Of a DNA stretch of 64,000 bases, positions 16,501-42,700 are shown piece after piece. Under the pieces are notes generated by a model. The model did not search any database. It had not been told where the DNA came from and worked only from the letters and a program-made list of their open reading frames with translations. The first letter of the stretch is position 1. Each line of letters opens with the position of its first letter. Location of the stretch: NCBI GenBank assembly GCA_965240325.2, contig OZ251235.1, forward strand, positions 310,001 through 374,000. The letters run 5' to 3'. This DNA comes from Rebecca billardiae RCC1528. Taxonomy: Eukaryota; Protista; Haptophyta. The position numbers were made by a program, and so were the translations under genes.

Positions 16501-17060
16501 CCCGCCTCCATCACCGCGCGGTAGCCCGCGATGTTGGCCTGCGACGAGAGGACGTCAAACGCCTGCCCGCGCGAGAGCTGGCGCGGGATCATGTCCATCG
16601 CGAACACGGTGGCGCCCTGCTTCTGCATCTGCTCGATGAGCGCGGGGTTCTGCGCCGGCCAGAAGAGCGAGACTAGGCAGCGGTCGCCCACCAGCTTCGC
16701 CTCCTTTGGCGTCGGCTCGCGAACCTTTACCACGATCGACGCGTTCCACGCGCTCGCGCGATCGACGATCTTGGCGCCCACGTTCTCGTACGCCTTGTCG
16801 CTGAAGTCGGCCGCGGCACCGGCGCCCTTCTCGATCTGCACGTTGAACCCCTCGTTCACCAGCTTCGCCACTGTGTCGGGCGTCTGCGCGACGCGCTTCT
16901 CGAGCGGCACCGACTCCTTCACGACGCCGATCGAGAGGTTGGTGTACGCCTTGCCCGAGCGGTATGAGTACTGCTTGCCGGTCGGGAGGGCGTCGGCTGC
17001 CGGCGCGGCCTCCTCCACCAGCGGCTTGTAGCCCTGCCCATTGCTGTCGAGGGTCGGCAT
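13528..17060 (-). CDS. NNT: Proton-translocating NAD(P) transhydrogenase, single chain in alpha-beta order; exons 17060-14559, 14362-13778, 13680-13528
   Basis: [63 protein letters not shown]|[32 protein letters not shown]; GT-AG introns at 14558-14363 and 13777-13681 restore the frame. Confidence 0.95.
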
Positions 17061-17429
17061 GGCCGCGGTCCCAAACGCGCTCGTCCGCGCGGCGGGGCTT
17101 CGTTCGGTGGCGGTCCCGTCGACCGCTGTAGCTACTGGTCGCACGGGGAGGTACAGGGCGCGCAGCAGGGGAAGCGGGCTGGCGCCACTTTCAACTTTGC
17201 TGGCGCCGTCGTTGGCGCTGCACGCCCAGGGCTGGGCGCTGATTGGCTGCGGCCCCAACTCCCAAGCCGGCAGCTCGGGCGTGGACTCCCATTGGCGGGT
17301 CGTTGGCCCATGGGACCAAACGAGGAGCGCTGTGCGTCGTTTCGATAATATTCGAATGGGCTTTTGAATAGCTCCGTCTCAGGCTGTTTACGAATTACGA
17401 CCCGATCGACGATGATCGAGAAGACGACG

Positions 17430-20006
17430 TCAGGTGGCGACGGGGTGCGGCGCACGGCCCGGGCGCGACCGCGTCGGCCCGGGGCGCACGCGAGCCCCGC
17501 TGGCCCCGTTGCCATCACCATCGCGCGCACGCCCCGCGCTCGGAGGCGTGGGCCCCGCTTCCACCGTCCGCTCGTCGCCGCGCGCGCGGAAGAGCTGGCC
17601 GAGCGCGGCGGCGAACGAGGCGGAGTGCTCGCCCGAGCCGAGCGCTTCCGCGCGCGCGCTCCCGCCGAGGCGGGCGGAGCTGACGAGGCGGTGGCACTCC
17701 AAGATCGCGTCGGGCCCGTTCCCAGCGTCCGCGAAGAAGGCACGCACCGCCTCGGCCGCGTGGCCCTCGCCCGCGGCGTCGCCTGGATGGAGCGGCTCGC
17801 GGGCCGCGTCGAGCAGCGCCGCCCGCGCCACGCGCCGCGCGTCGCGCTCGGCGGAGGTTGCGCCGCCTCCGCGCGAGACCTTCGCGAGGTTGAGCGAGAC
17901 GTCCACGCCACCGGGCGCGCGCTGCGTGCGCACCGGCCCGCGCGGCGCCCGGAAGCTGCCGACAAACTCGGCCGTGCGCTCGGCGGTCCCCGCGTCGCCG
18001 CCGGGCGCGGCCGCAGGGTTGACCAGCATGTCGAGGAAGCTGCTCACGGGCAGCGGCGCGGCGTCGCCCGCGCCCGCGCCCGCGCCCGGCTCGCGCGCCG
18101 CGTCGTGCAGCGCGCCGCGCGCCACACCGCCGCCGCCGCCCTCGGCGCCGGGCTGCCGCGGCTGCGGCGGCCGCGCCGGCTGCTGCGTGCCGGCGATGCG
18201 CTCGAACATCTGGCCCTTCCACTCGGCAATGTGCGGGTGATCCGCGCCGAGCACGCTCTCGAAGATGGCCTGCGCGGAGACGACGAGCGGCTCGGCGTCG
18301 GCGCGCGCGTCCTGCCGCACGAAGTGCAGCGCCAGGTTGCCCAGGTTCTTGGCCACGCCCGTCAGCAGCTCCTTCTCCGCGTCGAGTGCGCCGCCACCGC
18401 CCTCAGGCACGGTAGAACCATGCACGCGCGCGAGCTCGGCCTGCGTGCTCTCGAGCTCGCGCGCGAGCGTCGCCTTCTCCTCCTCCTGCGCCGCGCGCAC
18501 GCGGCGCAGCTCGGGCGTGTCGTCCAGCGCCGCCATCGCCTTCGCCAGCGCGCTCGTCTTCGCCTGCCGCTCGACGAGCAGCGCGTTCTTGCGCGCCTCC
18601 GCCTCGCGCTGCGCCGCCGCCTCGGCCGCGAGCGCCGACTTGAGCTCGTCCTTGGCGCGCGCGGCGGCGGCCTGCGCCTGCTTGGCCTCGACGATGTGCG
18701 CCTTCGCCGCGCGCTCGAGCTCGAGCACGGCCTCGTGCGGCGCGGCCAGCTCCTGCAGCACCCGCGCCTCGAGCGCGTGCAGCGCGCCCTGCTTGCCGTC
18801 GAGCTGCGCCTGCAGGTTGGCTGAGAGCCCGCCGTAGTCGAGCGTCGCGTTCACGCGCGCGCGCACGACCACGTTCATCGCCTGCTGCCCAAACTCGAGC
18901 GAGTTGTGCGTCTCGAAGGTGTCGCGCTTGGAGGGCGCGACGCAGACGATCAGCGTCGTCTTCGCGTTCCCGCCCAGCGCGTTCGACAGCAGCCGCGTCA
19001 GCTTGGACTCGCGGAAGGGCGGGCGCTCGGTCTTCGAGTTCTTGGCCATCGCCTCGATGCAGCGGCCGAGCGTCGTCAGCGACTTGTTGATCGAGATGGC
19101 CTCCTCGAGGCCCTGGCCCTCGACGCCGGACTTCTTGATGCGCTCCGAGCCCGCCAGGTCGACCATGTACAGCTTGCCCATCAGCGTGCGCGTGCCGCCG
19201 CGCCGCGTGAGCTGCAGCATCATCACGGCGTGCGAGCGCGACGAGTCGGCGTTCATCGACGTGGACGCGGTCGCGCGGTTGCCGTTGCCGTCGGCGAGGA
19301 CGGCCTTGGCGTCGTCGACGGAGCCGACGGGGCGCCAGGTGAGACCGGTGAGGAACACGCCCGTCTTCGTGTCCTCGCGGATCTGCACCTCCGCGCTCGG
19401 CTCGAGCAGGTCGTACAGCGCCTCGAGGTACACCTGCAGGTACGCCATTTCGACCGAGTACTCGTGCTCCGCGTCCGCGCGGATCTGATCGAAGATCTCC
19501 TCGAAGGCGCGGATCATCACGCCCGCGCCCGCGCCCGAGCGCTCGTTCGCGAGCGTGTACGTCTTGCCCGCGCCCGTCTGCCCGTAGCACATCACGCAGC
19601 CGGTGAAGCCCTCGAGCGTCGACTTGACGATGCTCGCCGCCGCCGCGTCGTACACGTCCTGCTGCGAGCCGTCAGGCGGGATGACGCGGTCGAAGACGAA
19701 CTGCTTGGGCGCCTTCGCGGATGCCTTGCTGAACGAGCCGCCACCGCCGCCCGCCGACTTGAACGAGCCCTCCCTGCCCTCGCCACCGTCGTCCGCGCCG
19801 AGCGCCCACACCATGTCTCGCGCGCGGTCCACCTGCAGCGACACATTGTCCGCGCCGCCCTCGTCGGCGGAGACCTGCGGCCGGATACGAACGACAACGT
19901 TGACGCGCTCCTCGTCGCCGCCACCCTCCTTCTCGCCCTCCTTCTTGCGCGGGGCAGCCGCCCTCCCTTTTGTGGGCGTTGGGGCCCGGCCAGTTTGAGT
20001 GGCCAT
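17430..20006 (-). CDS. Kinesin motor protein (ARK-like motor/neck, coiled coil, KLC-like TPR)
   Basis: P-loop GQTGAGKT, switch I NADSSRSH, switch II DLAGSE, PFRESKLTRLL; coiled coil; TPR-like NLGNLALHF...AEPL...AIFESVLGADHP. The 3' exon structure is uncertain. Confidence 0.9.
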   Translation of the reverse strand: MATQTGRAPTPTKGRAAAPRKKEGEKEGGGDEERVNVVVRIRPQVSADEGGADNVSLQVDRARDMVWALGADDGGEGREGSFKSAGGGGGSFSKASAKAPKQFVFDRVIPPDGSQQDVYDAAAASIVKSTLEGFTGCVMCYGQTGAGKTYTLANERSGAGAGVMIRAFEEIFDQIRADAEHEYSVEMAYLQVYLEALYDLLEPSAEVQIREDTKTGVFLTGLTWRPVGSVDDAKAVLADGNGNRATASTSMNADSSRSHAVMMLQLTRRGGTRTLMGKLYMVDLAGSERIKKSGVEGQGLEEAISINKSLTTLGRCIEAMAKNSKTERPPFRESKLTRLLSNALGGNAKTTLIVCVAPSKRDTFETHNSLEFGQQAMNVVVRARVNATLDYGGLSANLQAQLDGKQGALHALEARVLQELAAPHEAVLELERAAKAHIVEAKQAQAAAARAKDELKSALAAEAAAQREAEARKNALLVERQAKTSALAKAMAALDDTPELRRVRAAQEEEKATLARELESTQAELARVHGSTVPEGGGGALDAEKELLTGVAKNLGNLALHFVRQDARADAEPLVVSAQAIFESVLGADHPHIAEWKGQMFERIAGTQQPARPPQPRQPGAEGGGGGVARGALHDAAREPGAGAGAGDAAPLPVSSFLDMLVNPAAAPGGDAGTAERTAEFVGSFRAPRGPVRTQRAPGGVDVSLNLAKVSRGGGATSAERDARRVARAALLDAAREPLHPGDAAGEGHAAEAVRAFFADAGNGPDAILECHRLVSSARLGGSARAEALGSGEHSASFAAALGQLFRARGDERTVEAGPTPPSAGRARDGDGNGASGARVRPGPTRSRPGRAPHPVAT

Positions 20007-20229
20007 CGCCCTGGTGCGCTCCAGCGGCTGCTGGCAGATTTGTGGACTACGATCTCGAGCGATCTCGGCACAGATGTCACATTTTCGTATCGAATAGCCC
20101 CCCAAAATTGGGACGGGTTGATGCCAAATTCTGTCTGGCCGGCTTGCTGCAGCGGCTCCAAGGCGAACGGACTGAGAGGGCCCGCCAAGGCCAGCGCGCT
20201 CGGCGCGCTCGGCAGGCGGTCAGGTCAGC

Positions 20230-21070: not shown

Positions 21071-23521
21071 ATACTGTAAATCATTCGTACTCACGACGCG
21101 GCTCGGACCCGGGTGGCAGGGTGAGTGGCGGCCGCCGGTGGCGCGCCGTCAGCTGACAGCTCGCATGGACCTGCTGTGCCCCAGAGCCAGGGCGAGCGTG
21201 CAGGCTGCCCGGATGTCAGACGACCGTCTCAGCCGCTGGGCCCTGGCGTGTGATCCGGCGGTGATGTAGTCGTCCCCGTGTGGCACCCTGACCCTGGCCC
21301 TGCGCGGCCGCGTGCGCGCTGCCCGGTCATCATCGGTCATTCAATCAATAGTAGTTCTGCTGTGTGCACTGAGTGCCCACGGCCTGGGCGGGTGGCAAAT
21401 TGTCCATGCTGGTGGAGTTATTGTAAACTCGCGCCAGAAAAAAGGAGAGGGGAGGAAAAAGGAGGGGGAGGAGGGAAGGAGGGAGAAGAGAGGGGGAGAA
21501 GAGAGGGAGGAAAAGGAGGATCATCGTAGTCGGTGATAGTGGTCAGTCTGATACAGCTGGGCGCTCGGTCAGGGACATCATGTCTCGGCTACAGACGTGA
21601 CATCCGTCGACTGTAGTGGCTGAATCGGTTACGCCTGCTCGTCGTCGCGCGCTCGGCGCTTCGAAATCACTGTCGTCGTGCCGTGATTGTGACGACAGGC
21701 GACGACAGTGACCCTCCGCCGCAGGCAAAGCGCACGCCGTCAGACCTGGGCTCAGTGAGGCGGTAGCGGTGCGCACACGCCCTGCCGTCACAAACACATG
21801 CCGATGCATTCAATGGGCGTCTGGCTGTTTCACTCATCGACAACTGCTGCCGAGCAAGAGGAGCGCTCGAGTGAGGCGCGTCTAAGGCATGGTATCACGC
21901 CACGCAGTCAGCGGCCAGCGAGCAAGTGGGCGGCACTCCGCCCATCAGCAGCCTCCGCACACGTGTGAGCTGTGGTGGAGCTGTGCAGGTGGTCACGCGA
22001 CAGACGAGAGGAGGCGGCGGAATGCGGGCGAACAGTCGCCTCAGCCGATGCGCACGAAAGCGTGTGTCGGTCAGCGGATGGCTACCTCGTACACACACGG
22101 CACAGTGCACGGCTGCCAACAGCACGTGCCACTGGGTGGGTCGCTCTCACAAAGGACTCAGCGCCGCGAGAGCGAGGAGCGCTGGCCTGACGACGGGGGG
22201 CGCGAGTGCAGGTGCGGTGGACCGGTGCCGCGGCCTGTATGCGACTCCCGATGCAAATGCGCGCGCGCGTGCGCGTAAGGGTGTCGTCCAGCCTCTGCGG
22301 CACTCAGACTCTGGAAGGCTGCTGCGGTGCACACATGTGCCTTCCTCAGCCGCCTCACGCGCCAAGTGGCACGCATCACGGCGGCGAGAGCGTCCGCGAC
22401 GTTGGCGATCGCAGGGCCGACCCCTAGCAGCTTCAGCGCCTCGTCCTCGGTACCGCCCGGAGCCCAAAGCTGCTGAAGCTCTGGGCCGACCACGATCTCA
22501 CACTCACCTACCGTGCAGCAGGGGCCTGCTTTGCGAGCGCGGTCGTACGTGCATGGTCCCTTGCTCCACGGTGTGCTTTCTCTCGCAAATCCGCTGCTGA
22601 TCGCGCCTCTCAGCCATGCGCCCAGCGCCGCCGCGACAAGCTGCGCAGCGCCGCGGCTGTCGGCGCGCGCGAGGGCGGCCGCGACTAGGCACGCGACGGC
22701 AGGCGGTGCGCTGTGCGGCGCGGCGGCGGGCGGCGCGTTCGGCACTGCCGGCGCCACAGAGGCCGCGCGCTCGCAGCTGAGATTGCGGTGCGCGTCTACC
22801 CATCACCCGCGTCGCCGACCGCTGGCGGCAGCGGTGGCCGCCGAGGGCCGCGCGCACTGGCGGCGTAGGTGTGCCGCGCGCCGCCGAGCGTGCACGCGGG
22901 CGCGCGTGTGTGCGTCACGTCGTCGGGAAAGGGCAACGCCACGGCGCCCCGCATCTGCCGCGGCCGGCATGGCGACACGAGATACGGCCGCGTCCCCCGA
23001 AGGTCAGCGGCGCTAACACCGAAGTCAGCAACGTGAGCAGCGCCAACCTCGACGCTGACAAGAGCTGGACTGCTTCGGCTTAGCTGTCAGACGCCACGTG
23101 GGTGGTCAGGCGCGTCCCCTGCCGACACGTGCATATGTGCCAGTGGGAGTGATGCACGCGAGGCCACGGCGTTTAGCGTCGATCGTGCGTTGCCAAACGC
23201 GCCTTGAGGTCGCTCCCCACGCGCGGTCTGTGAGGGTGTTTGAACCCCTCGCCGGGCGCCATCGTCAGCGACCAAGTGCGAGGGCCGGAGGAGGGGAGTC
23301 AACGAGGGCCAAGGGCGTTGTCGCCACGAGGCCTCCGCCAACTCGTGCAACCATTGGCTGAGCCAAAAGATGGCAGTCTGAAGTCCTATGTGAGCCAAAA
23401 GATAGCCCAATAAGTAAAAGTCCTGCCTAGGCCCTTCCGGACAGCCAAAAGAGTCCACCAGCATGCCCTAGTAGCCGGGGCGGGTGGCCAAACGAACGCT
23501 TCCGTGAGTCCGTGCGTCGCG

Positions 23522-25180
23522 ATGAGCGCCAAGCGCACGATCGCGGACCTGAGCGTCGACGATGACGGCGAGGACGGCGAGCAGAATGGTGCCAAGTGCC
23601 GGGCGGTGGCAGCCACGCCCCAAGCCGCGCCGCCGCTACCCGCGTTCCGCCTGCTGCGCGGTCGTGACGAGCCAACCGCAAGCCATCTCGTCACCCTAAG
23701 CGAGCTGACGGCGGGCGACGCATGGGAGTGCGTGATCCTCTCGAACTACCTGATCTGCGAGCACTGGCTCCTGAGCGCGTGCCCGGTGCTCCGCCGGACG
23801 CCCACGGTCGTCATCACAACAGAGCCGCTGTCGCCGTGGCACGAGCGCGTGCAGATCTTCAAGCCGCGGCTATTCGATAAATACGGCGTGAATCACTCCA
23901 AGTTCTTCGTGCTGCTCGCGCCGGCCGGCGTGCGAGTGATCGTGCACACGGCCAACCTGCTCTACCACGACGTGGAGCACATGACGCAGGGCGTGTGGTC
24001 GCAGGACTTCCCGCGAAAGGCGCTCGTGCCCGGCTGCCCGCCCACGTGCGAGTTTGAGGAGAAGCTGGTCGCGTACCTCAACGCGACGGGCTGGGAGGGC
24101 GGCGGGAAGGCGGGAGGTGTCTCGTCCCTGTCGCTGCGCGAGTTCGACTTCTCGCGCGCCGCCGCTCACCTGCTCGGCTCCGTCCCCGGCCGTCACGGCC
24201 GTCACGAGAAGAAGGAGCGCGACTACTGGGGCCACCAGCAGCTCTCAGTCGCTCTGCGGCGCGAGCGGCTGCAGCACGGCACGGCCGCGCTGCCCGCCAG
24301 CGCCGACGACGAGCTCGTGCTGCAGTTCTCCTCGCTCTCCTCCTCCGGCCGCTCGGCCAAACAGCACCTCCTCGACGAGCTCGTCGACTCGATGTGGGGG
24401 CATGCGGGCGGCCGGCCGGGACGCGTGCGCGTGGTCTGGCCGACCGTGGACGAGGTGCGCCTCAGCAAGATTGGGTTCGGCTCAGGCACGTCGATGCCCT
24501 CGGCGAGCAACCACGTCAGCGATGTGCACCGCCGCCAGGTGATGCACCGCTGGGTCTCCGCCGGCGCGGATGGCCCGTCCGCCGCTGGCGCGGCGGGGCA
24601 GCTCGGGCGAGCGCGCACGATGCCGCACATCAAGAGCTACGTGCGCTGGTCCCCGGGCTCAGGCCGCATCGTGTGGGCGGCGCTCACCTCGGCCAACTAC
24701 TCCATGGCCGCGTGGGGCAAGCTCGAGAACAACTCGTCGCAGCTGTACATCAAGAACTTCGAGCTTGGCGTGCTCGTCACGCCCGGCGCGCTGGCACGCG
24801 CCGGCGCTGCCGTGCGCGCCTGGAACTGCCTCGCGCCAGACGCCCGCTGCGCGGTGCCAGCCGTCGTACGAGCAGCAAAGGGCGCTGGCGCCGAGGCGGA
24901 GGAGGCCCCCGATGCAACGGCTGAACCGCCCGCGCTGGTGCCGCTGGGGTCAGCCGCCGGTGCGGCTGTCCAGGGCGGCGTCGTGTCGCTCCCTTTGCCC
25001 TATTGCCTCCCGCCGACACCGTACGCCGCGGGCGATCGACCGTGGTCGGCGAGAGACGACGTGGGGCAGGCGATCGTGTATTCGCCGCCGGATCACCTTG
25101 GCCACACAACGGTCGGGCACATCAAGCTTCATGGCGTTGACAAGGAAGGGCGGGTGGTCGCGCGCGCAACATTGAGCTAA
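23522..25180 (+). CDS. TDP1: Tyrosyl-DNA phosphodiesterase 1
   Basis: Two HKN-type motifs (YGVNHSKF...VHTANL; MPHIKSY...TSANYSMAAWG), TQGVWSQDFP, QFSSL, VWPTVDEVR, NFELGVL, LPYCLPPTPY..DRPW. Confidence 0.95.
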   Translation: MSAKRTIADLSVDDDGEDGEQNGAKCRAVAATPQAAPPLPAFRLLRGRDEPTASHLVTLSELTAGDAWECVILSNYLICEHWLLSACPVLRRTPTVVITTEPLSPWHERVQIFKPRLFDKYGVNHSKFFVLLAPAGVRVIVHTANLLYHDVEHMTQGVWSQDFPRKALVPGCPPTCEFEEKLVAYLNATGWEGGGKAGGVSSLSLREFDFSRAAAHLLGSVPGRHGRHEKKERDYWGHQQLSVALRRERLQHGTAALPASADDELVLQFSSLSSSGRSAKQHLLDELVDSMWGHAGGRPGRVRVVWPTVDEVRLSKIGFGSGTSMPSASNHVSDVHRRQVMHRWVSAGADGPSAAGAAGQLGRARTMPHIKSYVRWSPGSGRIVWAALTSANYSMAAWGKLENNSSQLYIKNFELGVLVTPGALARAGAAVRAWNCLAPDARCAVPAVVRAAKGAGAEAEEAPDATAEPPALVPLGSAAGAAVQGGVVSLPLPYCLPPTPYAAGDRPWSARDDVGQAIVYSPPDHLGHTTVGHIKLHGVDKEGRVVARATLS

Positions 25181-31376: not shown

Positions 31377-32304
31377 CTAAGCTTGATCTCTTTCTCTGTT
31401 CAGTGACTCAGAACTCGCCACTGGCTGCTTGAACTCCAGAGTCTCCACGGTGTTACACTACCGTACATGATACGCGCCGCCCCGGGACTCTCTGACCGAC
31501 TTGGGAGTCGGCCGAGTCGGCCCATCCGCCCATCGTGGTCGGGGACTCGTCGTCGAGCCGAAGTGTCGCGCGAGATGAGAGATTTGAGGACTCAATGATA
31601 TTGTTTCCGTACGTTCGCGTCTGCCCGTTGTTAAATACCTGTGTAGATAAGCGGTCAGGCATACGGTTTACTATGCTTTCACGTGCGCACTCGGCTCAGG
31701 CACCGATCTGCGCAGCAAGACGCGTTCGTCCGGGCCAGCACTCGGGGAGCCTCATGAGCCTGGGACCGCGCTGCCGCTGGGACAAGGAGGCAGGACAAGG
31801 AGGCAGCAATTCCTTGCGGGACGACGCCCCATCAAGAAGACGTATCAGAGGGTCGGCGTCCCCTCCAAGGACGCCTGTGACGGGCGACCCACCTCCACCG
31901 TCTGCTGGCATGTGCAGCACCCTACGTTGGGCCGCGTGCACGGTCGGCATGTGATCGATCGCTTGCAGTTGGCAAGCAGCGACAAGGAGCGGGGGTTGCG
32001 GACCACCAAGGTGTCCCAAGGCTCTGAGCGTACCCACTGACGACCCGCGCTGGCGGGGCCACCTGCACCGCCACGACGCACGCCAGTGCACGGATTCCCA
32101 CTCGCTTGACCACGCCAGCGCCGGCGCAGCCTGCTGGCCGAAGCGGGCGGGCGCATGAAGTACCCCAGCCGGAGCGGTACCATAGCTAGCGGCGGGCAGA
32201 GAGCACTTGAGCTTGATTCCAAGATTCCCTCCCTCATTCACGGCCACCCGCGCGCGCGGAGTGCGAGTACACGGTCGCCTCGGCCGGTCGCGAGGCGCGT
32301 GTGG

Positions 32305-35235
32305 ATGGCGTCGAGGCCGGGCAAGGCGGGCGGCACCGCTGGGCCCACCTCGCCACAGACGATGGCGTTACTCGCACCGCTGGCTTCGAGCTCGCCTCTC
32401 GCGCCATCGAGCGAGATTCACCTCGACGCGGCGGTCGTCAGAACGCTGAGCGAAGTCATCGCGGGCGGCCAAGGTGCGCACTCGCCGCTCAGCATCCAGC
32501 TGGCAGCGTCGCGGTCGCCTGACGCCGGCAGCAGACGACGGCGTGTCGGACCACGAGCTCGGCAGCGCCGGCATAGCGGGAGTGGTAGCGACAGCGACAT
32601 CGACGACGAGGAGGACGACTGGTACTTTGTCGCGGACACCACAGCCAGGAGCTTCAGCGAGCGGCGGATCAGCCGCACGATGCGCAAGGCGGCGCGCGCG
32701 CGCGCCTCCCTGGCGCAGACACTCGGCCCGGCGGTTGGGACGCCGACGAGCCTGGGGGCTGAAGAGGCGGATACGGCGGATCTCGCCCGTGGCCCAAGTG
32801 GCGAGCTGCCCTCGCCGCGCGCGCTGCCGTCACTCCTCAGGCAGCGCTCGGTGGCGGGCGGCGCCGGGCGCGTGTCGCTCTCGCAGGCCGGCGCCTCGCG
32901 CAGCTCGCTCGCGCTGCCCCATCGGCATCCCGTGGGCAGCAAGCGGCTGAGCAGAGCCGTGGGCGTGCCCACGAGCACCGCGGAGGACGCGCTGCCCTTT
33001 GCTCCGGCGCCGTTTGGCCACTCGGCGAATGGACGCTCGGCTGCCACCGCACTCGAGCGCGCTGCGCAGCGCGCGCGCGCAGAAGCGCAGCAAGCGCTCG
33101 CCGAGCTGGGCACCTACGCCGTGCAGGAGGAGGCCGATGCGCCCGCGCCCGCGCCCGGACAGCCGGCAGCCGCCGGCGCGGAGTCTCCACGCGAGGCGGA
33201 TCAGCACGCCGCGCCGGCCGACGGCGGCGGCCTGGGGCGCACTGGCAGCGCGCCGGGCAGCGCACCGGCCGCCCGCCCGGACGAGGCTGAGAGCGGCGCG
33301 CGGCTGCTGCACGCAGGCGCGCGCGTCGCGCCGCAGCGCAGGAGGGGCGGCGGGCAGCTGCAGAGCCTCGACGCGCAGCTGGCGGCGGTGGACGACGGCC
33401 CCTTCGAGGGCTCGGCGAGTGTCTGCCGGCCGATCTCCCCCGCGGAGACGGGCATTCCGAACTTCAGCGCGGAGGCGCTGGGCCATGAGCTGCGCACGCG
33501 GCTGGCGCCCGCGGTGTTTGGCCGCGCGAGCCTGGGCGAGCTCTCGCGCCTCGTGCGCTCGGAGGACGCCGTGCTCGCCCGGTGCGCGCGGTACGCCCGG
33601 CTGTACTCCGCCCACGCGCCCGCGCGCTCGGTGCTCGTCCTCGTGCGCGGCTCCGTCACGCTCGAGTGGTTCGACGGCTGCGTGGAGACGATCCTCGTGA
33701 CGGGTGACGAGGTCCGCGGCTGCACGCACGGCGGCGCGCACGCGTCGCATGGCGGCGCGGGAGCGCAGGCCGCGCCCCACGCGGCGGACGGCGGGGCTGG
33801 CGCTGCCGGGCGCGCCGGCGCCGGCGCGGGCGGCGACGCGGCGGGTGCGGCGTCGCTGCTCAGATCGCCCGCGAACGGCGCCGCGCCGACGCGCGGCGCT
33901 GCGTTTGGGCTAGAGGCCGCGGCCTCGCGCGCGCGCGGCGCTGTGGATGGCGGCTTCGTCCTCCCGCGCCTCGCCACGGCCACCATCTCGCACGCCGCGA
34001 TCGTCCTCCTCGTGGAGCCGTCCGCGCTGCCTGCGGTGCTCGCCGAGGCGTGCGCGCTCGAGCTGCGCTACCGACTGCTCGCGCGCCAGCCGCTCTTCCG
34101 CCAGCTGCCGCCGCGCGTGCTCGCGCCCGCTGCGCGGCTCTTCACGCTGCGCCGCGCGACGCGCGGCGAGGGCATCGTGCTGCAGGGCGACGAGGCGGAC
34201 TCGTTCCAGATGGTGCTGCGTGGCACGGTGAGCGTGCTGTTGCTCACGCCCGAGCGTCGGCTGGTCGAGGTGGCGCGCATCGCGGCTGGCTCGCACGCGC
34301 CCTACTTTGGCGAGCTCGCGCTCTCGGCGCACGACGCGGCCGGCGCCGAGGGCGCGCGCGCGATCCAGCGAATCGCCTCGGTCGTCGCGCTGGACGAGGT
34401 GTGGCTGCTTGTGCTACGCAGGCCGCACTTCCAGCCCGCGCTCGAGCTGATCCCCGACTGGCGCGAGCGCTTTGCGCGCGCGGCCGAGGCCCTCGAGCGC
34501 ATCAACGCGATCCGGCTGCAGCACGAGCAGGAGCGGCAGCTGAGGGCGAGGCTGCACGAGAAGAGCGCACTGCTCGCCGCCGAGCGCGAGGCGGAGGCCG
34601 CGAGGCTGGCGCAGCTGCGCGCCGCGCGCGCGCAGCTGCGCACCGCGGGCGTGCACGTGCAGGAGCGCGGCAGGGCCGGCGGCGGCGCGGAGGGCCCTGC
34701 CGCCGAGCTCTCCACGCCGCCGCCTGGCGCGCTCGCGCCCATGCACGCAGGGCCGCGGCACTGGACGGCGAGCGCTGCGTCTCGGCCGGCGCACGCGCCC
34801 AAGCGCCCCCTCACCATGTTCGTGGCGGGGAGCGCCGAGCACGGCCCCGCCGCGCGGCTCGGCAGCGAGGGCGCGCACGAGCTCCGAGAGCACGCCAGCG
34901 CGGAGGGGCGCGTGCTGCGCACCGCAAGCAGCGCAGAGCAAGGCAGCCCGCCGCCCGCGGCAGGGCGTGCGCGGCTCGGGGCCGTCAGCCCCGTGCGCCG
35001 GCGGCCACACGAGCGGGAGCGGCAGGTGGCGATGGAGACAATCATGAAGCTTGCAGCGGCTGCGCACGCACGTGACGCGCCAGCCGGAGCAGGGGGCTGG
35101 GCTGCAGCCAAGCAGCATGTCCTCATCCGCGCGCGACAGTCGGCGGGCTCCGCCAGTGCCATCACGGATGCCAGTTGTGCTGCTGCTGCCACCGTCGTGC
35201 CCACCGGTCGTGCCGGTGGCGGCGATGCCGCATGA
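32305..35235 (+). CDS. Cyclic-nucleotide-binding domain protein (one clear and one degenerate cNMP domain)
   Basis: PLFRQL...[24 protein letters not shown]...PYFGELAL...[16 protein letters not shown]; start codon uncertain. Confidence 0.72.
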
Positions 35236-35293: not shown

Positions 35294-35498
<205 letters not shown>

Positions 35499-35774: not shown

Positions 35775-38700
35775 TCATTGTGAGAAGAGCTCGCCACCAG
35801 TCATCTCGGCGAACTGCACGTACCCACGCACCACGCCGTACGCGATCCAGAGCGGCGCGAAGATGAGGAAGCACGGCGTGACGACGCGCCGGCCGAAGCG
35901 GTCGGCCGCGTTGGTCGACTCGTTGCCCAGCCAGAAGCCCACGTACTTCTCGCGCACCAGCTGCGACTCGCGCGCCTTGATGCCCGCGCGGAACTGCTTC
36001 TCGGAGACGCGCACGTTGTCCACCGAGAGCTGCTCGCCCACCAGGTGCATCACGAGCTGCGCGACCGCCAGGTCGTCCAGCCGCTCCTTGGTGCACTGCG
36101 GCACGAGCTCGCGGATCACCTTAATCATCGCCGACATGTTGAGCATGCCGCTCTGCTCCGAGTCGAGCTGGACGAAGATCTGGTGGATCGGGTCGCCGAG
36201 CGTGCCGATCTGCCCGGCGGGGCGCCGGCCGGGCGAGGGCATCGCCCACTGCGTCACGGCCTCGTTCATCGCGAGGAACCGCTGCTTGAGCGGCGAGGCG
36301 GGCACGCGCGAGCCCCGCCGCTCGCTGAGCCGCGAGACGATGCGCTCCCAGTGGCCCACGGCGCGCGCCTCGGCGATGGAGTGCACGTCGTGGTCACTGT
36401 CGGTGCTGTCGGTGCTGCCACGCCGCCTGCCGCTCGCGACTCGCACCTGCAGCCCACGCCGGCCACTGCCGCCCGCACCGCCGCCGCGCGCCTCCGCCCC
36501 CGTGCGCGCCTCCGCCCCCGTGCGCGCCTCCGCCCCCGTGCGCGCCTCCGCCCCCGTGCGCGCCGAGGCCGCCTTGGGCGCCGAGGCCGGCTCGTCAGAA
36601 TCCTCGTCGCTCGACGCGTCCGTGCGGACGACGGCGGGCGTCATGCCGCCGGACGCCGCGGACGCGCCCGCGCCAACGGTGACGGTGACGGGCCCGCAGC
36701 GCACGCGCCGCCCCTGCGAGTCGCCCTCGGCGCCGCCGCCCGCCGCGCCCACGGCGCGCTTGCCGACGGGCTTTGCCTTGGAGAAGGTCGCTGAGGGGCC
36801 TGCGTCTCGCGAGCTCGAGCCTGAGACTGGGCCGAGGTCGCTGCACTCGAGCTCATCCTCGGAGGCGACGCCCGCGCTGGTGGTGGCCGGCGAGGCGAGG
36901 CGCGGCGAGCGTGGCGACGTCGTGGCGCTCGACATCAGCTCGGTCACCGACGTTCGGCCGGGGCTGCGCGGCTGCGGGCGCGAGCTCGCGGGCGCACCGG
37001 GTGAAACCGACGCGGCTGGCACGTCCGCGCTCGTCGCGGCCGCAGGAGTGAGCGCCGGTGGCGCCGCCCCGGGGCGCGCGGCCCCGGCCGGCGCCGCCGC
37101 GGCCGCGCCGCTGGCATCGAGCTGCGCCCGTACGCCGCCCTCCCGTGCTGCGCGCAGGCTCTGCGTGAGCGAGCCGCACGCCGGCAGCGACGCTCGGCGC
37201 GCATCCACCACGCCTGTCGTCGCCGCGCGCGGCGGCAGCTGCACGGGAGGCGCAGACGGCCCCAGCGCGCCCCCCGCCGCGGCGGGATGTACGGTCGTGG
37301 CGCGGCCACGCTCCGGCGAGACGATCGACGGCGCGGACTGCCGCCGCGGCCCACCACTAGAGCCGTCGGCGCCTGGCCCGGCGCCCTTGAGCGGTGCGGG
37401 CGAGACCTTGGCGGAGGCCGCGCACCCGCCGAGCCGGCCGGCGGCCGCGGAGCCGGGATGGGCGCGCACGCCGGCGTGCGACGACGACTCATCGCGCGTC
37501 TTGCTGCCGCGCCGGCGCATGCCGAGGAGCGGGCGGTCGAACGAGAACCGGCGCGGCCCGCTCACGAAGTCGTCCACCGACTGCGACCGCGCCAGCTTGG
37601 ACTGCACGAGCGCGTCGTACACCTGCTGCCTGTGCGCGCGCGCCACGTGGTTGACGAGCGCGTTCTTGGTCTCCACAATCACCTGCTGCTGCTGCTCGAC
37701 CTTCAGCACGGAGGAGATGAAGATGGCGATGACGGTGATGTTGCACGCGGCGAAGAGGAAGAGCATCGAGAGCAGCAGGAAGATGTCCAGCCACGAGCTC
37801 AGCGACTCGGACGGCGGCAGCCGCGCCAGCGCCAGGTTGCGCAGCGTGACTGTGGAGAGGGTGCTGATCGTCATCACCGTCACGCGCGCGGGCACCGCGT
37901 CCGGCGGCAGGTAAAACTGCGTGAAGCCGAGGATCGAGACGATGACCGACGGGAGGATCGTCTCCGCCACGACCGGCACCTGGTGCCGGCGCAGGATGAA
38001 GCTCACCTCGATCGCCGAGTGCCTCGTCGACGAGCGCGCGTCGATGCCTCTCCAGCCGGCCGCGTGCGTGTCCGCGCGCGCAAAGACAGCAAAGCCGTGC
38101 GCGTTCTGCAGGTCGCCCGAGTTGTGCACGCCGAGCTCGGGGGTGAGGCGCACGGCGGTGCTCGGCAGCGTGGCGAAGAGCGTCACGTTGCACCGCTGCG
38201 TGTCGAACGGGTACGCGCCCACGTCGATCGTGCACAGCGTCGTCGCCTTGAGCCTCGACCTGAGCGTGAGGTTGCCTGAGTGGTGCAGCTCGAGGAAGGC
38301 GTCACCCGCACTGCCGCCGCTGCTGCCCGCTGCCGAGCCGTCGCCGCCCTCGAGCGCGTCGAGCGGCTCGAGGCTCACGCCGGGCGTCCACGCCTCGTGC
38401 GCGCGGAGCTCGAGGCTGCGCGGCGGCTCGTGCCCCTCGCCCTCCTCCGCCTCCCCGCCCGCCGCCGCGCCCACCTCCCACGCCAGCCGCGCGTCCCTCC
38501 ACGCCAGCACCAGCCACAGCACGCTCTCCAGCCGGCCCGAGCGGTCGCGCAGAAACGCGTCGTTGATGTGCAGCCCGACGGAGACGGGGATGTGCGCCTC
38601 GGACGCGGCGAGGGAGGAGGCTGTGGGTGGGGCACGTACGTACGAGCGGAGCAGCTCGCGCCGGGTCAGCGACCGCGCGTCCGCTGCGCGAGGGCGCACG

Positions 38701-39659
38701 GCTGAGACGATCGTGCCACCGCCGCCGCTGCCGCCGCCCGCACACAGCGCGGCGGCCGAGCCGCGCGCGTGCACGAACTGGAGCGCGCGCACGAGGGTGG
38801 GGAGGAGGCCTGCGTCGTCGTCGGCGCGCGCGATCTCGTCCACACTCGCGCGCAGCTCGCCGCTCGCCAGCATCTCCTCCCGGCTCGCGTCGAAGCCCGA
38901 GACCCAGAGCTCGCGGCCGGCGGCTCGGGCGGCGCGCACGACGCCTGCGGCCGCGTCGTCGTTGGGCGCGACAATGGCCTGCAGCGTGGGGTGCGAGACG
39001 AGCAGGCGCGAGGTGAGCGTCGCCGCCTCCTCCTCCGCGTCGGGCCACGCCTCCAGCGCGACCCGCTCGACCACGCGCACGACGGTTGGACACTCGGCGC
39101 TCAGCGCAGCGGCGACGCCGTCTGCGCGTGCGCGCGCGGCCGCGCTCACGCCCGGGCCCTCTATGATGACGGCGGGCGTGTGCACCCGCCGCTCGCTGCA
39201 CAGCGTCTCGCCAACCGCCTCGCCGCCACGGAACGCGTCGGGCGCGACCACGGGCGTGCAGTGCGGCGCCAGCACGCCCACGTCGCTCGGCTGCTCAAAG
39301 AAGAGCACAGGAGCGCCCGCGTCGAGCACTGGGCGCCAGGCCGCCGCCGAGCGCGCTGCGACGAGCACGAGGAGCGTGGGCTGCGCAGGCTGCTCGGACG
39401 CCGAAGCGTTGGCAAAGGCGACCGACGCGAGCGCCTCTGCGAGCGCTTGCTCCGCGGCATCAGACTGTACGAACGCGCTCGGCCGGAGCTGAACAAAGCC
39501 GTCCGGCCAGTCGCTGCGGATGTGCTCGCGGAGCTGGCGGTCGAGGCGCTCGAGGAAGGGCTCGAAGTCGCGCCAGACAAGCTGCACCTGTGGGGTGCTT
39601 GTGCCCGAGAGGGCGAGGCTCGCCGCGCACACGGCGAGCAGGCCGCACCGCGGCCGCAT
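35775..39659 (-). CDS. Pentameric ligand-gated (Cys-loop) ion channel, anion-type, with N-terminal periplasmic sugar-binding (PBP type I) domain and EF-hand-like motif in the M3-M4 loop
   Basis: Signal peptide; PBP-I motifs (ARARADGV, IVAPNDDAAAGVVRAARAAG..VSGFDA); WRDARLAW, AWTP; Cys-loop CTIDVGAYPFDTQRC; M1 ILPSVIVSILGFTQFYL, PARV, M3 WLDIFLLLSMLFLF, M4 ADRFGR..PCFLIFAPLWI. Confidence 0.85.
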   Translation of the reverse strand: MRPRCGLLAVCAASLALSGTSTPQVQLVWRDFEPFLERLDRQLREHIRSDWPDGFVQLRPSAFVQSDAAEQALAEALASVAFANASASEQPAQPTLLVLVAARSAAAWRPVLDAGAPVLFFEQPSDVGVLAPHCTPVVAPDAFRGGEAVGETLCSERRVHTPAVIIEGPGVSAAARARADGVAAALSAECPTVVRVVERVALEAWPDAEEEAATLTSRLLVSHPTLQAIVAPNDDAAAGVVRAARAAGRELWVSGFDASREEMLASGELRASVDEIARADDDAGLLPTLVRALQFVHARGSAAALCAGGGSGGGGTIVSAVRPRAADARSLTRRELLRSYVRAPPTASSLAASEAHIPVSVGLHINDAFLRDRSGRLESVLWLVLAWRDARLAWEVGAAAGGEAEEGEGHEPPRSLELRAHEAWTPGVSLEPLDALEGGDGSAAGSSGGSAGDAFLELHHSGNLTLRSRLKATTLCTIDVGAYPFDTQRCNVTLFATLPSTAVRLTPELGVHNSGDLQNAHGFAVFARADTHAAGWRGIDARSSTRHSAIEVSFILRRHQVPVVAETILPSVIVSILGFTQFYLPPDAVPARVTVMTISTLSTVTLRNLALARLPPSESLSSWLDIFLLLSMLFLFAACNITVIAIFISSVLKVEQQQQVIVETKNALVNHVARAHRQQVYDALVQSKLARSQSVDDFVSGPRRFSFDRPLLGMRRRGSKTRDESSSHAGVRAHPGSAAAGRLGGCAASAKVSPAPLKGAGPGADGSSGGPRRQSAPSIVSPERGRATTVHPAAAGGALGPSAPPVQLPPRAATTGVVDARRASLPACGSLTQSLRAAREGGVRAQLDASGAAAAAPAGAARPGAAPPALTPAAATSADVPAASVSPGAPASSRPQPRSPGRTSVTELMSSATTSPRSPRLASPATTSAGVASEDELECSDLGPVSGSSSRDAGPSATFSKAKPVGKRAVGAAGGGAEGDSQGRRVRCGPVTVTVGAGASAASGGMTPAVVRTDASSDEDSDEPASAPKAASARTGAEARTGAEARTGAEARTGAEARGGGAGGSGRRGLQVRVASGRRRGSTDSTDSDHDVHSIAEARAVGHWERIVSRLSERRGSRVPASPLKQRFLAMNEAVTQWAMPSPGRRPAGQIGTLGDPIHQIFVQLDSEQSGMLNMSAMIKVIRELVPQCTKERLDDLAVAQLVMHLVGEQLSVDNVRVSEKQFRAGIKARESQLVREKYVGFWLGNESTNAADRFGRRVVTPCFLIFAPLWIAYGVVRGYVQFAEMTGGELFSQ

Positions 39660-39761
39660 GCCCGCCTGAGGGACGATGTCAAGTCGGCCGCCCGCGATGT
39701 TGTGCTGCCTGCTGCAGTTTTCAGCAGCAGTTTGCATGCATGGCCAGTACAGTTCACTATG

Positions 39762-42700
39762 TTCAGCCGAGAGAGGTGGCATTGCCACCTCTCGCGCGAG
39801 TTGGGGAAACGTTGAGTTCCCGAGTTTTTACACGGGGCGGCAATTTCTGGCGCGCGCAATCTTCCGATTTTAAGGCGGTGGGTGGCGCCGCCGCCGTCGC
39901 GCTCTCGACGCGCGCGAGCTGCGCGCGCGCGGCGGCGGTTTTGGCCGCGCGGCACTGGGCCGGCTGGGTCCGCACGGCCGAGGAGGCCACTCTTGCCGCG
40001 GTGGTCGTGGCGCGGGGACGTCCCCGCCGCTCGCCAACCTCCCGCGAGCGCCTCGCGCCGCCTCGCGCCGCCTTCACGCCATCTCCGCGCGCCAACTGCA
40101 CGCTCTGGACGCCTCGGCGGCAGAGCCGCGCGCGGCGCGGTTGTGTGCCGTGTAGACTGGGCCCATGCGCGTCCGCTGTCGGTGCGCCCCGGCCACGCGC
40201 GCGCGCAGCCCAGACCTCTCGCCTCACGCGTCGCCGCCGAGCACGGCTGTGCACCTCAGTCTGCCGTGGTGCCGCGCGCGCGGCCGAGCGAGCAGGCGAC
40301 GCGTTGTGGAGCGTGTGACGCACGAGACGGGAAGGCGTCCGAGCGTCGGAGCCACCGCTGACCGGCGGCGCGCACGCGATCGGCTTGAGCCATCGGCGCC
40401 GACGGCGCGCGCGCGCTGAGCCAGCTGAAGGCTTGTGCGCCATGGCACGGCAGCCGCCAATCGCGGCCTGCGGCCGTACTGTGCGGCAGGCGCGCTCGGT
40501 GCGGGCGCTTCGGGGCGTGGCCTCACGAGACCGGAGCCCCTGGAAGCGCGACGCATATGAGCTCGCCCCGGCCTGAGTGAGCGCGCATCTGTCAGTGATC
40601 GGCACACGCAGCAGCACGGGGTGGCCGTCGTCATGAGCTCCGCGCTGAGCGCTCCCACGCTGGGTGTCGACCAGGCACAAAGAACAAGCGAGCATGCGCA
40701 CTTTTGAAGTTCTCACCTGCATGGTGCGGCGCTAGGCGTGCACGGTCATGCTGGCGCATGCGAGACCATTCAGCAGGGCTGTGTGCGATGGCCGGCGGCG
40801 CAGGCGCCACGCGTGCGTGTGCGCTGTCTCCGTACCGGCGGAAGGCTGGGATACCAGTATCCCACCCTTCACCTACGCTGACACCTTGAAAAGCTCGTGT
40901 CAGCCAGAAACGCGAGCTTCGAGCGCCGCGCGGCCAGGTAGCACGACCCACTATTCAGCCCATGTAGTCGGATGACCTGAGCAGCAGTTGGCATCATCGC
41001 GCGTGGGCGCGCGCACACGCCACCTCGGGCCAACGTGAGAGTGCGTCGGGCGGGCGCGTGTGCGCACGAATCGAGTGTCAGCAGCAGCGCTCGCTCGCGC
41101 TCACCGAGGAGACATACTTGCTCGCTGGTCGTCTGGGTCAGCAGGCTACCAGCCGTGGTAGACGTTGCAGCAGATGGGATGGAAGGAGATACAGTCTCAA
41201 ACTTCCTGGTAAGCAGTCGGTCTGCGCAGACGCGGCTGCTCCCGGCGCACAAGGACCGTGCGCCGTGAGAGAGAGAGCTGCCGTGGCGCGCCCACCTCGG
41301 AGTCAGCGGACCAGCAGCACTGCAACCATGGAACTGTGCGGTTCAACTGGAGGGTTACGACTTCTGACTGGTATAGTCACTCTCTCTGTCAATGGAAGCA
41401 CGTGGCTGGCATCGGACAGACGCTCAGATGAAACGCGTTGAGGCAGGTGCGCGGCAGCATGCGAGTGCTCGCGTGCGTGCGCGCAAGAGCACACGGGCCA
41501 AGGTAAGTGCCGGGGGTCATACATCTACTCTTCACGCGGCGCCGTGCGGTGTGTCGTGGCGCGCTCAGCGCGGCCGTGTCAAGGCCATGGCTCATGACGA
41601 CGGCCACCCCGTGCTGCTGCGTGTGCCGATCACTGACAGATGCGCGCTCACTCAGGCCGGGGCGAGCTCATATGCGTCGCGCTTCCAGGGGCTCCGGTCT
41701 CGTGAGGCCACGCCCCGAAGCACCCGCACCGAGCGCGCCTGCCGCACAGTACGGCCGCAGGCCGCGATTGGCGGCTGCCGTGCCAAGGGAGGTCCGGGCC
41801 GGGAGCTCCCAGCGAGCGGCCAGCGCGACATCACCTCAAGGTTTTTCCTGAGCGCCGGGCGGCAGCGGCGGCGAGGGCGGTGCTCCGCTGGCGGGGCGCG
41901 CACGGGGCACGGCGCTGCGGGCGCGGATGTGTCCGCAGAGCCGGCGCGTGCGGACGGGCTGTTGCGGGAGAGCATCTGGCGCCCTCCTGCGCCGCGCGCA
42001 TTGCGCCACGCCTCTTTCGCCTTGACTCAGGGCAGCGCGCACATGCGCGCTGCGTCAAGGCCAGCCTTGCCGCGCCGCAGCCGACCGCACGCGCGCCGTG
42101 CGCGGCGTGGTCGGGAAGGAACGGGCGCGGCTGCCGGGCGAGATGGCGACATCACGTGCGCACGCCATGTCGTCCCGCGGCGCCGCGAAAGGGCGCGATA
42201 ACGGATCCGCACAGCTGTTGACGAGTGCTGATTTCTTGCCGTGCCTGAAGCCAGACCTGAGCTCGAAAAAGATGATGAAAGTGCATCAGCGCGAGGAAAG
42301 CGTCGCACCCAGCACTTCTACATGGCCACGTGGTGATGGACATTCATGTAAGAGTAGTCCGCGTGCCCGTCTGGCACTGTTCTGTGTCTCAATGATCGTC
42401 CCGACAAGGGTCGCGACCGCGAGGCCGTGCAGACCATTTGAGACAACTCGAAGAGGCGTGCAAACGGACCGGCGACACGCTCGTCAAGGCGTGGCGGGGC
42501 GGCATGGCGTGCGCACGTGATGTCGCCATCTCGCCCGGCAGCCACGCCCGTTCCTTCCCGACCACGCCGCGCACGGCGCGCGCGCGGTCGGCTGCGGCGC
42601 GGCAAGGCTGGCCTTGACGCGGCGCGCATGTGCGCGCTGCCCTGAGTCAAGGCGAAAGAGGCGTGGCGCAATGCGCGCGGCGCAGGAGGGCGCCAGATGC

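Follow-up and report, generated by a model that had tools for sequence, protein, structure and literature searches.

The Gene and Its Product

The stretch analysed here (the window, 64,000 nucleotides, positions 310,001 to 374,000 of the forward strand of contig OZ251235.1, GenBank assembly GCA_965240325.2, from the haptophyte Rebecca billardiae RCC1528) carries on its reverse strand an open reading frame (ORF) at 35775..39788, in which the ATG at 39659 gives a product of 1294 aa. Judged from its sequence, this is a single-exon gene for a predicted subunit of a pentameric Cys-loop receptor, i.e., an ion channel of the pentameric ligand-gated class (pLGIC), in which a complete extracellular periplasmic-binding protein domain of type I (PBP-I, or Venus flytrap) precedes a normal ectodomain. 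Its features are given below with the evidence for each; GC3 and GC2 stand for the G+C fraction at third and second codon positions, AF2 for AlphaFold2, TRF for Tandem Repeats Finder and M1 to M4 for the four transmembrane helices.

35775..39659, (-): complete coding sequence, 1294 codons plus the stop at 35775-35777 (ORF list, GC3, three Pfam domains in order)
39600..39659, (-): predicted signal peptide, about residues 1-20 (basic N-terminus, then a hydrophobic stretch; similar segments open the homologues)
38685..39596, (-): PBP type I domain of the ribose/allose-binding class, residues 22-325 (Pfam Peripla_BP_4 and Peripla_BP_1, AF2, Foldseek)
37983..38678, (-): pLGIC extracellular domain, alpha1 helix at residues 328-338 and beta-sandwich to residue 559 (Pfam, PDB search, AF2, Foldseek)
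38190..38234, (-): Cys-loop C476-x13-C490, containing YPFD, CTIDVGAYPFDTQRC (pattern match)
37710..37982, (-): M1-M3, residues 560-650 (Neur_chan_memb, hydropathy, AF2 helices 560-583, 589-613 and 623-685)
37884..37892, (-): P(-2')A(-1')R(0') at the cytoplasmic mouth of M2, residues 590-592, followed by L9' and T13' (sequence and alignment)
35943..37709, (-): M3-M4 intracellular region, ~590 aa, rich in Ala, Gly, Ser, Pro and Arg, disordered (GC3 0.83-0.97)
36486..36564, (-): 18-bp tandem repeat, 4.4 copies, encoding (ARTGAE)n in the intracellular region (TRF and translation)
35817..35942, (-): pre-M4 motif ADRFGRRVVTP and M4, residues 1240-1281 (hydropathy peak at 1259-1281)

An earlier interpretation made from the letters alone (the sequence-only reading) had described one uninterrupted ORF opening with a signal peptide, and the ORF list and codon bias bear out its continuity across the 1294 codons. 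In 60-codon windows, GC3 stays at 0.83-1.0 from residue 8 through the stop and GC2 lies mostly at 0.25-0.85 (~0.5), while the in-frame stretch upstream of 39659 has a GC3 of just 0.72. GC3 being high over all 1294 codons and lower before the ATG, the whole frame can be taken as coding, with a sensible start at 39659 and no need for an intron. This ATG is also the first in the ORF to give a signal-peptide-like start, and a signal peptide is plausible both from the protein's own sequence and from the hydrophobic N-termini of homologues. The Pfam search proposed with that reading returned the PBP, Neur_chan_LBD and Neur_chan_memb domains in this order, all above their gathering cut-offs. The protein collection was also checked for an identical entry under three alternative starts, and it contains none.

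The N-terminal Venus-Flytrap Domain

Peripla_BP_4 (PF13407) matches residues 100-262 with an E value of 2e-13 (50.9 to 54.2 bits against a cut-off of 35.1), and Peripla_BP_1 matches too. The Peripla_BP_4 match spans only positions 60-222 of the 258 of the profile; residues 22-345 were therefore modelled with AF2, on an alignment of 27 related PBP segments (A2). The predicted model (mean predicted local distance difference test, pLDDT, 84.1; predicted template-modelling score, pTM, 0.83) displays the strand-helix alternation of two Rossmann-like lobes. Compared with the PDB by Foldseek, it retrieved exclusively sugar-type binding proteins, with 4yle, 4zjp and the ribose-binding 2ioy, 2dri and 1drk at the top and allose-, xylose-, glucose/galactose- and myo-inositol-binding proteins among the further matches. 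The best of these have E values of 2e-15 to 4e-14 over ~313-320 columns on targets of 271-283 residues, with template-modelling (TM) scores, normalised by target, of 0.76-0.78. A PDB sequence search leads to the same proteins, i.e., residues 108-284 match the sugar-type solute-binding protein 4yle (8e-11) and the E. coli ribose-binding protein.

On this model, the N-terminal domain is a complete two-lobe PBP-I fold. Indeed, for the N-terminal ~300 aa, where the sequence-only reading had placed an RbsB-like PBP-I domain, fold matches were obtained both from Pfam, above cut-off, and from the AF2 model, which aligns over full length with ribose- and allose-binding proteins. The likeness to RbsB is one of fold only: the RbsB equivalog NCBIfam NF007936 scores 42 bits where its cut-off asks for 337, which rules out an RbsB orthologue. 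Two cysteines of the domain, C154 (39198-39200) and C190 (39090-39092), are invariant in 16/16 proteins of the same architecture (described below) and may form an extra, family-specific disulfide suited to an extracellular eukaryotic protein.

Ribose is contacted in the E. coli ribose-binding protein (RBP) by N13, F15, F16, D89, R90, R141, N190, D215 and Q235 (PMC3676853). We mapped these contacts onto the Rebecca protein through a HMMER alignment to 1drk and counted the same columns in a 16-sequence alignment of the family, as follows.

RBP F15/F16: F35/L36 here; an aromatic pair [FY]-[WY] in most members
RBP D89: E122 here; E in 14/15 of the family
RBP R90: Q123 here; variable in the family
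RBP R141: R178 here; R in 14/16 of the family
RBP N190: N233 here; N in 8/16 of the family
RBP D215: D257 here; D in 15/16 of the family
RBP Q235: E275 here; Q in 11/16 of the family
RBP F164 position: W205 here, one column off; W in 16/16 of the family

F164, which stands outside the list of nine, is the residue that we take to stack in the ribose site. By these counts, most ribose-contact residues of E. coli RBP are conserved across the aligned fused proteins. This conservation of the cleft argues that the PBP domain continues to bind a small polar ligand, sugar-like in its chemistry, even if the residues do not name it.

The Channel Part

The second half of the protein is recognised as a channel by several routes. 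Neur_chan_LBD (PF02931) matches residues 354-559 (E 8.5e-11) and Neur_chan_memb residues 567-682 (E 2.2e-14), and a PDB sequence search with residues 324-704 retrieves nAChR, GlyR and GABA-A subunits at 4e-13 to 1e-9. An AF2 model of residues 1-720, built on 109 sequences (alignment A3), contains the beta-sandwich (pLDDT 79.4, pTM 0.70) and is matched in Foldseek by nAChR, GABA-A, GlyR and GluCl structures at ~1e-18, with TM scores by target up to 0.71; among the solved structures compared with this model, no chain covers both the PBP and the channel domains. The core residues of the superfamily are all kept (W387, D389, R391, L392, W424, P426, G462, C476, P484, D486, C490, R558, L601): those of the WxDxRL and WxP motifs (W387, D389, R391, L392, W424, P426) are invariant in the family alignment, and C476, C490, P484 and D486 show little or no variation in the alignments. 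The true C-x13-C loop of the sequence-only reading was found exactly where it had been put, at residues 476-490 (38190-38234).

The hydrophobic segments correspond to M1 (561-585), M3 (626-644) and M4 (1259-1281), and an amphipathic M2 lies between M1 and M3. Four transmembrane helices, as previously proposed, are thus recovered: M1-M3 through Neur_chan_memb and hydropathy, and M4 at 1259-1281 together with the pre-M4 motif of the family. The PAR motif before M2 also stands, at residues 590-592 with L9' and T13'. When R592 is numbered 0', M2 runs V1' T2' ... L9' ... T13', i.e., VPAR then VTVMTISTLSTVT, and L601, the 9' gate Leu, is nearly invariant across the alignments. P-2', A-1' and T13' are the positions identified by classic mutagenesis as switching selectivity from cation to anion. 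From this signature of the anion type in M2, we infer that the pore prefers anions.

The join between the two halves is very short. In the AF2 model, the last PBP strand (residues 322-325) is followed by two residues and then by the alpha1 helix of the ectodomain (328-338), with neither a flexible linker nor space for a gene boundary between them. This bears directly on a gene-model artefact, in which adjacent genes for a secreted binding protein and for a channel would have been read as one ORF. The general ease with which read-through ORFs arise in GC-rich DNA is the sole point in its favour. Against it, the PBP strand meets the alpha1 helix within 2 residues, with no gap, and 15 further proteins, taken from independent assemblies, show the same PBP-channel junction, among them uninterrupted ORFs on DNA contigs of 5-11 kb and on contigs of 2.2-2.6 kb. 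We thus consider such an artefact very improbable: ORF continuity, codon bias, the two-residue join and at least 12 independent homologous fusions all speak for the single gene that had been claimed.

The ectodomain departs from its relatives at the classical agonist site. The columns that are aromatic in >=70% of unfused relatives, after the Cys-loop (loop B) and in beta9-beta10 (loop C), hold gaps or His in the Rebecca protein and mostly gaps or non-aromatic residues in most fused relatives. This is a hint that the classical site is degenerate in the fused protein, from loop alignments that are unsafe at 20-25% identity, and the loss of these aromatics fits a ligand sensing moved to the PBP. 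The same columns help to weigh another role for the clamshell, i.e., that of an allosteric modulator or assembly domain, as in NMDA/AMPA receptors, with the agonist bound at the classical inter-subunit site of the ectodomain. The fold of the ectodomain is intact (AF2, Foldseek), as this would require, and in DeCLIC, a bacterial pLGIC with a large N-terminal domain (NTD), the extra domain alters gating kinetics and is not the agonist site (PMC9897478). On the other hand, the loop B and C aromatics of unfused relatives are missing in the query and in most fused relatives, and the residues of the PBP cleft are strongly conserved. Taken together, we regard a purely modulatory clamshell as rather unlikely, though well worth keeping in mind.

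The ectodomain also carries two insertions rich in Gly, Ala, Ser and Glu, at about residues 395-415 and 432-455, where model confidence is low. Unspliced introns were considered for these insertions and rejected, as GC3 there is 0.93-0.98, i.e., coding.

The Intracellular Region and the C-terminus

The M3-M4 region, at ~590 aa, is far longer than in the fused relatives, where it measures roughly 40-150 aa. No Pfam domain was found in it, even at E 10. An EF-hand-like loop DSEQSGMLNMSA (36129-36164, ~residues 1166-1177) in the helical stretch before M4 was set aside, as it has no acidic position 12 and no Pfam support.

The C-terminus is linked to the rest of the gene by its own homology. When the last 74 aa were compared with 150 hits, the five best matches were all PBP-fused proteins, aligned at AD+xGRR+xxP and then at M4. 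On these sequences, the pre-M4/M4 motif is specific to the fused family, and since the five best C-terminal matches all belong to that family, the C-terminus, 1.8 kb downstream of M3, is tied to the same gene and family.

A Family of Fused Proteins

An exhaustive HMMER search with residues 1-720 against 1.84 billion representatives gave 1173 hits at E<=1e-3. The best of them reaches only 1.4e-23 at 28% identity, so a close homologue is lacking. Using phmmer with both halves and an alignment (A1), we found at least 12 clusters in which PBP and pLGIC occur in one protein of 630-1042 aa (P0002-P0005, P0012, P0014, P0017, P0021, P0022, P0026, P0045 and P0057). Their sequences stem from metagenomes and run assemblies (ENA, JGI or Logan). 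The ORF of P0003 is uninterrupted on DNA contigs of 5-7.7 kb and adjoins a gene with a BAH domain, a eukaryotic chromatin domain, which indicates a eukaryote; P0002 lies on an 11-kb scaffold. P0022 and P0017 stand on contigs of 2.2-2.6 kb that consist of the ORF plus ~80-150 nt flanks and look like transcripts. In the ESM Atlas, a cluster labelled Eukaryota, with Haptophyta as its commonest phylum (63 members, 753-aa representative, Neur_chan_LBD in 100% and Peripla_BP_4 in 38%), is the nearest by features (score 0.96) and the first one returned by shape (TM 0.44 on the query and 0.42 on the cluster model).

A quick IQ-TREE analysis of the channel part (105 rows) groups 14 fused proteins (SH-aLRT 92), with the query and P0017 on an unresolved backbone beside them; the smallest well-supported set that holds the query includes all 16 fused rows. 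This poorly resolved backbone, with the query and the fused proteins, adjoins a large PAR-bearing group. When all 16 fused proteins were forced into one clade, the log-likelihood (lnL) rose by 19 over the free search (approximately unbiased test, AU, p 0.80). The likelihood of the constrained clade being better, a single origin of the fusion is compatible with the data. VPAR before M2 is found, within the family, in the query and P0017 only; the others have a deletion of 3-4 residues or D-R at -1'/0'. VPAR and APAR are the signatures met most often in the best hits that lack the fusion. By sequence, the family thus seems to hold predicted pores of both the cation and the anion type. The Rebecca protein is not a chimeric one-off. 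It belongs, as a divergent member, to a eukaryotic family that already exists without a name and most of whose members lack PAR.

The divergence of the query raises another possibility, i.e., that the gene is a decaying or silent paralogue of this family, kept open only because stops are rare at 73% GC. It does have the lowest identity to all relatives (<=28%), a long end branch and an odd composition, in addition to the low-complexity insertions and the ~590-aa loop. However, every core residue of both domains is retained, GC3 stays at 0.83-1.0 against a GC2 of ~0.5 in frame over 3.9 kb, and at ~0.014 stops per random codon an open frame of 1294 codons is not expected by chance. We therefore hold decay to be improbable.

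Two related architectures were met in these searches. P0010, P0011, P0013, P0090 and P0105 (e.g., L009:441-2168), among the best hits of the N-terminal domain, are proteins of 574-631 aa with two tandem PBPs and no channel. P0057 has an extra Cys-rich segment of ~200 aa before its PBP (residues 1-215), which gives a three-part ectodomain.

Genomic Context

The other genes of the window are eukaryotic (kinesin motor, Tdp1, zf-MYND, fused transhydrogenase, cNMP-binding protein), with a GC content of 58-75%. A bacterial contaminant or a recent transfer was rejected on account of the Cys-loop, the long intracellular loop, a GC content like that of neighbour genes and the eukaryotic neighbours themselves. 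Several of the neighbours are long single-ORF genes, i.e., a fused alpha/beta NAD(P) transhydrogenase at 13722-17258 (-), a kinesin at 17430-20105 (-) and Tdp1 at 23504-25180 (+), so the region appears to have few or no introns. The convergent neighbour, at 32155-35235 (+), is an ORF of 1026 aa rich in Ala, Gly and Arg, with a cyclic-nucleotide-binding domain at residues 666-762 (E 1e-7) as its one recognised feature. Between the two convergent stops, a gap of ~540 bp contains an (AT)n microsatellite of 99.5 copies (35297-35495); (GT)n-type runs appear in ORF translations.

Relation to Known Receptors

Fusions of a PBP-I domain to the N-terminus of a pLGIC were described in bacteria, in Magnetospirillum and Bradyrhizobium (Tasneem et al. 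2004, PMC549065). The Rebecca protein shares with them the order of signal peptide, PBP-I, pLGIC ectodomain and four transmembrane helices, i.e., a second small-molecule sensor placed before the channel. These bacterial proteins are prokaryotic and have neither the Cys-loop disulfide nor a long intracellular loop, whereas the Rebecca protein has a true C-x13-C, a ~590-aa loop and a eukaryotic genome context. More generally, the traits of prokaryotic NTD-bearing pLGICs (prokaryotic origin, no disulfide, minimal M3-M4 loop) do not describe it. The only NTD-bearing pLGIC with a structure is DeCLIC (PMC9897478, PMC12664993). It resembles the Rebecca protein in carrying a large extra N-terminal domain that influences gating, but its NTD consists of two beta-rich calcium-binding lobes and not of a PBP, and it is bacterial, predicted to be cation-selective and devoid of a Cys-loop.

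On the eukaryotic side, Cys-less, cation-type and anion-type Cys-loop genes were reported in protists, including Emiliania (34 genes) and Aureococcus, in a study that trimmed off the sequence termini and deferred domain architectures to future work (Jaiteh et al. 2016, PMC4795631). With the anionic GlyR, GABA-A and GluCl receptors, the Rebecca protein shares the Cys-loop, PAR, L9', T13' and the fold (best TM by target with GluCl 4tnv); unlike them, it does not keep the aromatic positions of loops B and C. Among the anionic Cys-loop receptors of protists and animals, none is described with an N-terminal domain (PMC4795631, where termini were discarded).

The clamshell itself can be compared with E. 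coli RbsB and the allose-binding protein, whose two-lobe fold it has over full length, with equivalents of R141, N190 and D215, an acidic residue at D89 and an aromatic one near F164. It differs from RbsB by an identity of ~19%, by the replacement of N13, R90 and Q235 and by the C154/C190 pair of the family; moreover, it is attached to a channel, whereas RbsB and the allose-binding protein serve an ABC transporter or the Trg chemoreceptor. A clamshell of bacterial binding-protein ancestry also stands on a eukaryotic ligand-gated channel in the ionotropic glutamate receptors (NMDA/AMPA), but on an unrelated tetrameric scaffold, while that of Rebecca stands on the pentameric Cys-loop scaffold.

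A Proposed Receptor-Channel

The sequence-only reading had proposed a chimeric chemoreceptor coupling the binding of a sugar or metabolite to chloride flux. Its architectural part, a PBP-I fused to a Cys-loop pLGIC with an M2 of the anion type in a eukaryote, is upheld by Pfam and by AF2 and Foldseek; its functional part is kept here as a proposal. We consider it reasonably probable that the protein works as a receptor-channel in which a ligand held in the clamshell, small, polar and sugar-like, gates or modulates the anion pore. In such a receptor, five subunits would form an anion-preferring pore, and a small polar ligand (sugar-, polyol- or sugar-acid-like) would bind in the cleft between the two PBP lobes. 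Lobe closure would then be transmitted through the very short join (residues 322-325 to alpha1 328-338) to the ectodomain, where it would open the pore or bias its opening. The long disordered intracellular loop would probably serve regulation or anchoring.

Several points weigh against this proposal. The product is predicted from the DNA sequence, and a GC content of 73% makes long ORFs easier to keep open. The Rebecca copy is very divergent, with at most 28% identity to anything, with low-complexity insertions in its ectodomain and an enormous loop, and it may be under relaxed constraint. The low score against the RbsB equivalog counts here too, and three of the nine listed RBP contacts are replaced (N13 by E33, R90 by Q123, Q235 by E275), which makes ribose itself unlikely as the ligand. 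The alignments behind the degenerate orthosteric site are uncertain in the loops. Finally, the modulatory role set out above is the known one for PBP-I-like amino-terminal domains in ionotropic glutamate receptors (as cited in PMC12664993).

A bolder form of the receptor-channel proposal would make the clamshell the sole agonist site, the classical inter-subunit site being vestigial; in these proteins, gating through a Venus-flytrap domain would then be met for the first time among natural Cys-loop receptors. We advance this only tentatively, as a possibility that we rather doubt.

Significance

In 2025, NTDs on pLGICs were still described as a prokaryotic feature (PMC12664993), and a full-text literature search, of incomplete coverage, found no paper that describes a PBP-pLGIC fusion in a eukaryote. 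Algae and protists are already known to have Cys-loop channels of the anion type, and bacteria to have PBP-I fusions; the eukaryotic combination of the two appears to be undescribed. The fused family contradicts the repeated statement of the field that such a layout is absent from eukaryotes. Conserved in a eukaryotic lineage, the family unites a PBP-I sensor with the Cys-loop disulfide and with an intracellular loop of eukaryotic style.

If functional, these receptors would be tractable objects for studying how a pentameric channel is driven or tuned by an accessory clamshell, and the design of glutamate receptors would be paralleled on a different scaffold. Should the clamshell be the sole agonist site, the family would provide a natural engineering template for coupling binding proteins to pentameric channels, and marine algae would possess a sensor converting dissolved sugars or metabolites into a chloride current. 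For phytoplankton, a functional receptor of this kind would mean a direct electrical sensing of dissolved organic compounds.

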